Below are positions 16,281 to 16,680 of a stretch of DNA of 64,000 nt, piece after piece (the first letter of the stretch is position 1; each line of letters begins with the position of its first letter). The position numbers were made by a program, and so were the translations under genes. The notes below the pieces were generated by a model. It was not told where the DNA came from and made no database searches. It saw only the letters and a list, made by a program, of their open reading frames with translations. The stretch is from Hemiscyllium ocellatum (Eukaryota), in assembly GCF_020745735.1 (NCBI RefSeq), contig NC_083407.1, positions 29,751,857-29,815,856 of the forward strand, read 5' to 3'.

Positions 16281-16680
16281 CAAGCTTTGACAAAGGGTCA
16301 GTTAGACTCGAAACGTCAGCTCTTTTCTCTCCTTACAGATGCTGCTAGACCTGCTGAGATTTTCCAGCATTTTCTCTTTTGGTTTCAGATTCCAGCATCC
16401 ACAGTAATTTGCTTTTCTCCAGTGTTTAACCCACTGCCACCTCTCTTCCAGGAATGCCTACTCTGAAGAAGTACTGCTCTTCTCTCCGATAGGATTTTCA
16501 TTTTTCTCTCTCCCCCTTGTCCACTTTCACTGCTTTCCTTTTCTCTCTCAGTGTTAGACAACGTATTTACTAAGACTCACTTCCAGCTTTGACAAAGGGT
16601 CAGTTAGACTCGAAACGTCAGCTCTTTTCTCTCTTTACAGATACTACCAGATCTGTTGAGATTTTCCAGCATTTTCTCTT
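16281..16680 (+). mobile_element. Non-autonomous PLE-derived/retrozyme-like element (family D): two ~96-bp direct repeats, each with a U3-A8 variant hammerhead
   Basis: Repeats at 16283-16378 and 16585-16680 begin agct-TTGACAA-AGGGTCAGTTAGACTC-GAAACGTC-agct; perfect 13-bp TSD atgataaggaatt at 16268-16280 and 16681-16693. Confidence 0.85.

Follow-up and report, generated by a model that had tools for sequence, protein, structure and literature searches.

The base pair between positions 3 and 8 of the hammerhead ribozyme core is open to exchange of its letters, for which the primary in vitro study is said to be that of Przybilski and Hammann in 2007. Hammerheads are also found naturally with this exchange. 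Perreault 2011 (PMC3088659) described covariation to U3-A8 in several natural hammerheads, noting that in vitro activity of cores in which 3 and 8 covary had been demonstrated earlier. The 3-8 pair was confirmed biochemically, according to PMC3884650, and the 2'-OH of nucleotide 8 has been proposed as the general acid (PMC6155905). The closest described motifs come from Cervera and De la Peña 2014 (PMC4209133), who reported a U3-A8 core in about 1,300 PLE motifs of Schistosoma mansoni. The minimal hammerheads (min-HHRs) of that study have a nucleotide between 9 and 10.1, a G10.1-C11.1 pair and a palindromic 15.2-16.2 segment, and they have no loop 3; they occur in direct repeats, act as dimers and show low activity in vitro. 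In a lizard PLE, cleavage needed the element's own protein, no RNA-seq ends were seen at the cut site, and hammerhead mutants left insertion in vitro unchanged (PMC11167929).

Type-I hammerheads of retrozymes are thought to act as dimers and release unit-length RNA, and non-LTR retrozymes have been proposed as non-autonomous partners of PLEs (PMC7229834; bioRxiv 10.64898/2026.07.22.740005). The 2026 preprint places non-LTR retrozymes in the one chondrichthyan genome sampled, and a term search of its text did not bring up the catalytic core or covariation (bioRxiv 10.64898/2026.07.22.740005). Our literature search found no report of a U3-A8 hammerhead core in sharks.

We analysed a window of 64,000 nucleotides from the genome of Hemiscyllium ocellatum, meaning the whole stretch of DNA, which holds a repeat family with a UUGACAA core, here called family D. 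Its 39-nt motif was found at 16283–16321 and again, with all 39 letters identical, at 16585–16623, both as minimal type-I hammerhead motifs on the plus strand (Table 1). The minus strand of the motif shows no hammerhead, reading CUGACGU without a GAAA box. Stem I has 4 bp (AGCU/AGCU) and stem II has 5 bp, including one G-U pair and the closing pair G10.1-C11.1 (G16295-C16309). Helix III is absent, with A15.1-C15.2 joined directly to G16.2-U16.1, and the palindromic ACGU at 16313–16316 (positions 15.1, 15.2, 16.2, 16.1), contained in the 3' box GAAACGUC, stands where it would be; stem I is likewise self-complementary. In the family consensus, the remaining invariant core positions (U4, G5, A6, A9, G12, A13, A14, A15.1, U16.1 and C17) all have the canonical letter. 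The sequence-only reading of this DNA had placed UUGACAA at 16287–16293 and 16589–16595, had called stem I, stem II and GAAAC-GUC intact, and had noted a truncated copy near 60403 retaining CAA ahead of the same stem II; the core coordinates were exact on direct reading, both copies showed the parts intact, and the sequence at 60399–60429 agreed.

Table 1. Coordinates of family D features in the window.
Feature	Position	Strand	Basis or remark
Stem I 5' strand AGCT	16283–16286	+	read directly; positions 2.4–2.1
Core TTGACAA	16287–16293	+	read directly; positions 3–9
U3 (canonical C3)	16287	+	read directly
A8 (canonical G8), C7 before it	16292	+	read directly
Extra (bulged) A after A9	16294	+	read directly
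Stem II 5' strand GGGTC	16295–16299	+	read directly
Loop 2 AGTTA	16300–16304	+	read directly
Stem II 3' strand GACTC	16305–16309	+	read directly
GAAAC	16310–16314	+	read directly; GAA = positions 12–14
GTC	16315–16317	+	read directly; C17 = last letter
Predicted cut, copy 1, between C17 and A1.1	16317/16318	+	inferred from standard hammerhead numbering
Stem I 3' strand AGCT	16318–16321	+	read directly; positions 1.1–1.4
Motif copy 2, UUGACAA at 16589–16595	16585–16623	+	identical to copy 1
Predicted cut, copy 2	16619/16620	+	by identity with copy 1
Tail of ~100 nt, common to further hammerhead families in the genome, highest-copy part	16322–16421	+	depth profile; homologous to tails of canonical-core copies
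Insertion, 400 bp, non-coding	16281–16680	+	bracketed by 13-bp duplication
Target-site duplication, left, 13 bp, ATGATAAGGAATT	16268–16280	+	identical 13-mer recurs at right
Target-site duplication, right, 13 bp, ATGATAAGGAATT	16681–16693	+	read directly
5'-truncated family D copy	60399–60429	+	keeps C7-A8-A9, stem II, GAAACGUC; without U3–A6
Inverted arm, tail in reverse complement	60340–60398	-	joined to truncated copy, giving a fold-back

The insertion consists of 1.3 tandem units, a 302-bp unit followed by the first 98 bp of the next, with the motifs 302 bp apart. Over the 98 bp that can be aligned, repeats 1 and 2 differ at seven positions, none of them inside the 39-nt motif, although we did not count this as constraint because five of the seven are clustered and hence not independent. 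These five are bunched within 14 nt (16341–16354 vs 16643–16656), and four of them, private to repeat 2, are G>A or C>T changes outside CpG, a pattern more suggestive of local hypermutation than of independent decay. No ORF was found inside 16281–16680, therefore the insertion would be a non-autonomous mini-element, either PLE-derived or retrozyme-like. Nor did the 64-kb window hold an RT/GIY-YIG ORF with a family D core; its only RT-like ORFs are a degraded one at 24820–25434 and that of a CR1 element at 53332–56235. The latter belongs to a CR1-type LINE on the minus strand (53332–57143), whose ORF2 of 967 aa carries endonuclease and RT domains and whose overlapping ORF1 of 308 aa carries a GDSL-lipase/esterase-like domain.

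From 16336 onward the sequence shows homology to the tails that follow the canonical cores elsewhere in the window, and this shared tail identifies family D as a diverged relative of those copies, not a chance look-alike. The truncated copy has three mismatches to the family D motif, all in its first four letters (GGGT for TTGA), and carries A8 at 60404. Genomic contigs repeatedly show joints between opposite strands at 16282/16283. A location in PLEs may be suggested by direct repeats within a duplication-flanked insertion, by fold-back copies and by a tail shared with canonical hammerhead families of the window.

The anatomy of family D is largely in agreement with the Cercyon PLE min-HHRs of S. 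mansoni (PMC4209133). Both are minimal type-I motifs without helix III or loop 3, both have the extra nucleotide 9/10.1, G10.1-C11.1 and the palindromic 15.2-16.2, and both are found in repeats or as solo or inverted fragments, putatively of PLEs in the case of family D, with U3-A8 and at high copy number. As in min-HHRs generally, the core boxes of family D read N3-UGA-N7-N8-A ... GAAA ... UH with 3 and 8 pairable, the extra nucleotide 9/10.1 accompanies G10.1-C11.1, and a palindromic segment accompanies the lack of helix III. The hosts differ however, a cartilaginous fish here and a flatworm there; no relation is seen in the sequences of stem II, loop 2 or the tail, and the family D element is a 302-bp non-coding unit with no attached RT ORF in the window. 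The compensatory 3-8 exchange with otherwise canonical core nucleotides is also shared with the hammerheads of Perreault 2011 (PMC3088659), but those are several full hammerheads, whereas family D is minimal, presumably dimer-dependent, and belongs to a retroelement family with copies in the thousands. Animal non-LTR retrozymes and the tandem type-I hammerheads of newt and Schistosoma likewise consist of units of a few hundred bp in tandem (PMC7229834; bioRxiv 10.64898/2026.07.22.740005), although in classical retrozymes the hammerhead has a short, loop-capped helix III and makes tertiary contacts between loops, in contrast to family D, which is without helix III and spans 1.3 units.

Canonical min-HHRs of the same window (e.g. 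8708–8735, 37536 on the minus strand, and 44363) share the architecture of family D, including the bulged A, the GAAACGUC or GAAAGCUA palindromes and the homologous tail (...GATGCTGCC.GACCTGCTG...), but differ in their CUGAUGA core (C3-G8, U7), in a stem II of 4–5 bp of other sequence and in stem I. Multiple min-HHR families coexist within the 64 kb. A second canonical family, CUGAUGA-A-GGAGC...GCUCC-GAAAGCUA, was observed at 3881–3921, 5881–5921, 12874–12914, 44011–44051 and 44357–44397, with AGCU as palindromic helix III and A at position 17.

To determine the state of positions 3 and 8 at the level of the family, Logan contigs of organism A (from a DNA run) and of organisms C and E were aligned to 16230–16700 at 80% likeness with a 3% reporting threshold. 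Among the better-supported variants (24 with less support were left out, and contigs suppress rare variants), no alternative letter reached 3% at any position from 16278 to 16313 in the three organisms, including 16287 and 16292; shares are depth-weighted, hence the corresponding ‘97% or more’ is not a count of copies. As there was no abundant G at 16292, UUGACAA is the family consensus, and not CUGACGA altered by decay after insertion. Within the limits of the contig variants considered, U3 and A8 are therefore fixed together in the family D consensus of three species, which bears out the joint fixation that the sequence-only reading had put forward as a test.

Contig depth rose from ~90 in the unique flank to 271,000 in the core bin, 1.26 million in the GAAACGUC bin and up to 3.2 million in the tail, falling to about 1,000 to 18,000 over 16422–16581, between the tail and the second motif; core bin depth was 271,000, 3,200 and 1,500 in the contigs of the three species, and none of these ratios are copy numbers. 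The depth profile points to a mini-element of ~140 bp, made up of motif and tail, of which there are very many copies, graded in their 5' truncation. Family D is present in the contigs of several species with divergence of up to about 20%, and sampled 31-mers of the 302-bp unit were found in runs bearing ten organism labels. A search of metagenome contigs for family D with N at position 8 gave 0 loci. Taken as a whole, family D is very probably a consensus-level variant of the PLE min-HHR.

Other positions of the motif do vary in these contigs. The CpG within ACGU is the most frequently altered, with C>T at 16314 in 12% and G>A at 16315 in 32% of depth in organism A, with comparable decay of about 13–22% in organisms C and E; many copies would thus be without the self-complementarity needed for dimer formation. 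At 16318 (position 1.1), G replaces A in 12–17% of depth in organisms C and E. This G still pairs with U2.1 as a G-U wobble, a one-sided change preserving stem I.

The direction of the change can be read from local relatives. All of the other intact min-HHRs in the window (10 of 10) carry C3-G8 in a CUGAUGA core. An old decayed relative on the minus strand at ~35365–35393 has the family D tail, a similar stem II and a CUGAAGA core, has lost G12, and shows GAAACGU decayed to AAACAUA; it hints that U3-A8 arose within a C3-G8 tail superfamily. Together, the ten local min-HHRs and this relative make U3-A8 the derived state and C3-G8 the locally ancestral one. Family D differs from the canonical cores at positions 3, 7 and 8. 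Position 7 is free in all hammerheads. Most likely U3-A8 arose once from a C3-G8 ancestor in the tail superfamily and has since been tolerated or retained, as pairing was preserved. Its origin in family D is probably independent of the Schistosoma case, given the C3-G8 state of the local relatives. A copy of another family (family A) at 63774–63801 has UUGAAGA, in which U3 faces G8 as a wobble, and reads GUU where it would be cut; it represents the single-step intermediate state, here in a decayed copy.

The best explanation, which we hold with somewhat more confidence than doubt, is that family D is the min-HHR of an abundant, non-autonomous, PLE-derived shark lineage with U3-A8 in its source copies where C3-G8 is canonical. 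The point-by-point match of its anatomy to the published descriptor (PMC4209133) was counted in favour of the PLE min-HHR reading. In the proposed mechanism, U3-A8 would replace C3-G8 as the tertiary pair positioning nucleotide 8, and with this Watson-Crick pair kept the core would still be able to reach the active fold. Lacking a helix III of its own, the motif would need a partner copy: with ACGU pairing in trans as helix III and AGCU as helix I, two copies would make up a double hammerhead, within one tandem transcript or between transcripts. Cutting of each copy after C17 would release a 302-nt unit RNA, and by analogy with other PLE min-HHRs this cleavage would probably be slow and may need an element-encoded protein. 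The 302-nt RNA could then be ligated to a circle and serve a PLE reverse transcriptase in trans as its template; copying for 1.3 turns around such a circle would also account for a 1.3-unit insertion with intact cut sites.

Predicted thermodynamics do not favour the active fold. For the 39-nt monomer, the hammerhead fold was predicted at -8.4 kcal/mol against an MFE of -9.9 (z-score -1.77), the MFE structure pairing G5-A6-C7 with G16.2-U16.1-C17, and the double-hammerhead dimer was predicted at -15.1 kcal/mol against a dimer MFE of -21.6. The inserted DNA at 16281–16680 contains both predicted cut sites intact, hence its template was either uncut or religated. A raw single-cell polyA RNA run (X22) gave 0 reads at the locus, and is no gauge of expression or of cut-site ends.

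Whether the covariation reflects selection on catalysis is a separate matter. The sequence-only reading had interpreted the double change as covariation and had taken it to argue for selection on catalysis; the first part stands, as U3-A8 is the state of the consensus, but the second does not follow from a double substitution that happened in one event, through two transitions, and selection on catalysis is unproven on sequence grounds. We regard the chances as even that the family D motif is catalytically competent and retained for that reason. Two of 13 invariant core positions have changed; they are each other's partners in the active structure, and their new letters are again complementary. 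Massive amplification of the lineage with this core, in several species, also counts in favour. The main alternative, which we consider unlikely though the most serious of the rivals, is an inactive relic in a still-mobile lineage, in which C3>U and G8>A were neutral transitions, mobilisation does not depend on cleavage, and the sequence, to the extent that it is conserved, serves as a site where the PLE reverse transcriptase binds or primes. How improbable the double change would be under this alternative depends on the substitutions allowed. If any two substitutions may fall on the 13 invariant positions, only 3 of 702 outcomes bring back Watson-Crick pairing between 3 and 8 by our own calculation, which speaks against a relic; both changes are however of the deamination type, the most common sort of transition, and with such changes only, at the five C/G core positions, two hits would fall on 3 and 8 about 1 in 10 times. 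Inserted DNA spanning both cut sites uncut, and a predicted MFE that sequesters core and cut site, would also suit an inactive motif, as would the low in vitro activity of PLE min-HHRs (PMC4209133) and the lizard PLE, where hammerhead mutants had no effect on insertion in vitro (PMC11167929). Against it, the other core positions, G10.1-C11.1, the bulge and the palindromic helices are intact in a consensus drawn from sequences diverged by up to about 20% in several species, and unrelated hammerheads have arrived at U3-A8 as well (PMC4209133, PMC3088659).

Decay of individual copies is a much weaker alternative. Under it, the family consensus would be CUGACGA, and C3 and the CpG at C7-G8 would have disappeared from the insertion once it had integrated. 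A CpG would indeed be present at C7-G8, and CpGs do decay strongly in family D (16314/16315), but among the variants considered neither G at 16292 nor C at 16287 reached 3% in the three species, and A8 is found in the independent copy at 60399 too. Separate decay of the two positions from a CUGACGA consensus, the outcome that the sequence-only reading had named as its own refutation, was not seen, while a CpG 22 nt away decays in 12–32% of depth. Per-copy decay is therefore largely refuted, and we consider it very improbable.

Recognition of the motif was assessed with descriptor and covariance-type searches of the window. The 31-mer from core to GTC has two perfect matches in the window and a third at 60399–60429 with three mismatches, where shuffles expect none. 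A minimal-hammerhead descriptor found 13 motifs, comprising ten CUGAUGA, one decayed UUGAAGA and two UUGACAA, all 13 with the bulged A and G10.1-C11.1. First-order Markov simulations of the window gave expectations of 0.5 motifs for any core, 0.035 for the canonical core and 0.06 for U3-A8, against two U3-A8 motifs observed, although the tandem copies at 16283 and 16585 are one insertion and hence not independent witnesses. Independent support for the family D core comes from the copy at 60399 (A8 only) and from the genomic contigs.

Rfam gave no hammerhead match to 16100–16800, at the gathering score or at E up to 10, and returned only chance miRNA/CRISPR-repeat matches. A control on a canonical-core min-HHR at 8658–8747 gave no hammerhead match either, so the blank result is due to the models and is uninformative on the U3-A8 core: Rfam hammerhead models do not cover motifs without helix III. 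The expectation that strict CUGANGA searches would miss this family holds, and extends to the Rfam models, which miss canonical-core minimal hammerheads as well. The control region is a perfect palindrome with two canonical min-HHRs, one per strand, and drew sub-threshold matches to mir-2432 and mir-1597 (E about 1e-8, 45–47 bits vs gathering scores of 93–100); PLE fold-backs thus resemble miRNA hairpins to the Rfam miRNA models. Chance resemblance, in which the stretch is not derived from a hammerhead, might be read from the lack of an Rfam match up to E 10 and the fold z-score of only -1.77, but we consider it scarcely credible, as Rfam misses the window's canonical min-HHRs too, the architecture and tail are homologous to canonical copies, and the descriptor expectation is 0.06 per window.

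The sequence-only reading had described U3-A8 as a rare tolerated variant whose letters pair in the active fold, and this is in the published record (PMC3088659, PMC4209133, PMC3884650). As earlier papers already report that 3 and 8 covary to U3-A8, that this is tolerated in vitro and that it occurs in PLEs, family D opens no new question; it adds a vertebrate, very high-copy case to the few natural covariations from C3-G8 to U3-A8. Whether PLE min-HHRs cleave in vivo and affect transposition is not moved by the 16281–16680 locus. Motif searches fixed on CUGANGA and Rfam hammerhead models undercount ribozyme-bearing repeats in shark genomes. We tentatively suggest, at somewhat less than even confidence, that a shark PLE mini-element lineage switched from C3-G8 to U3-A8 independently of flatworms, was amplified to thousands of copies in several elasmobranchs and stayed catalytically competent. 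If the switch was indeed independent and the motif is still catalytic, family D would be a natural replicated experiment for selection on the 3-8 pair of a minimal, dimer-dependent hammerhead in vivo.
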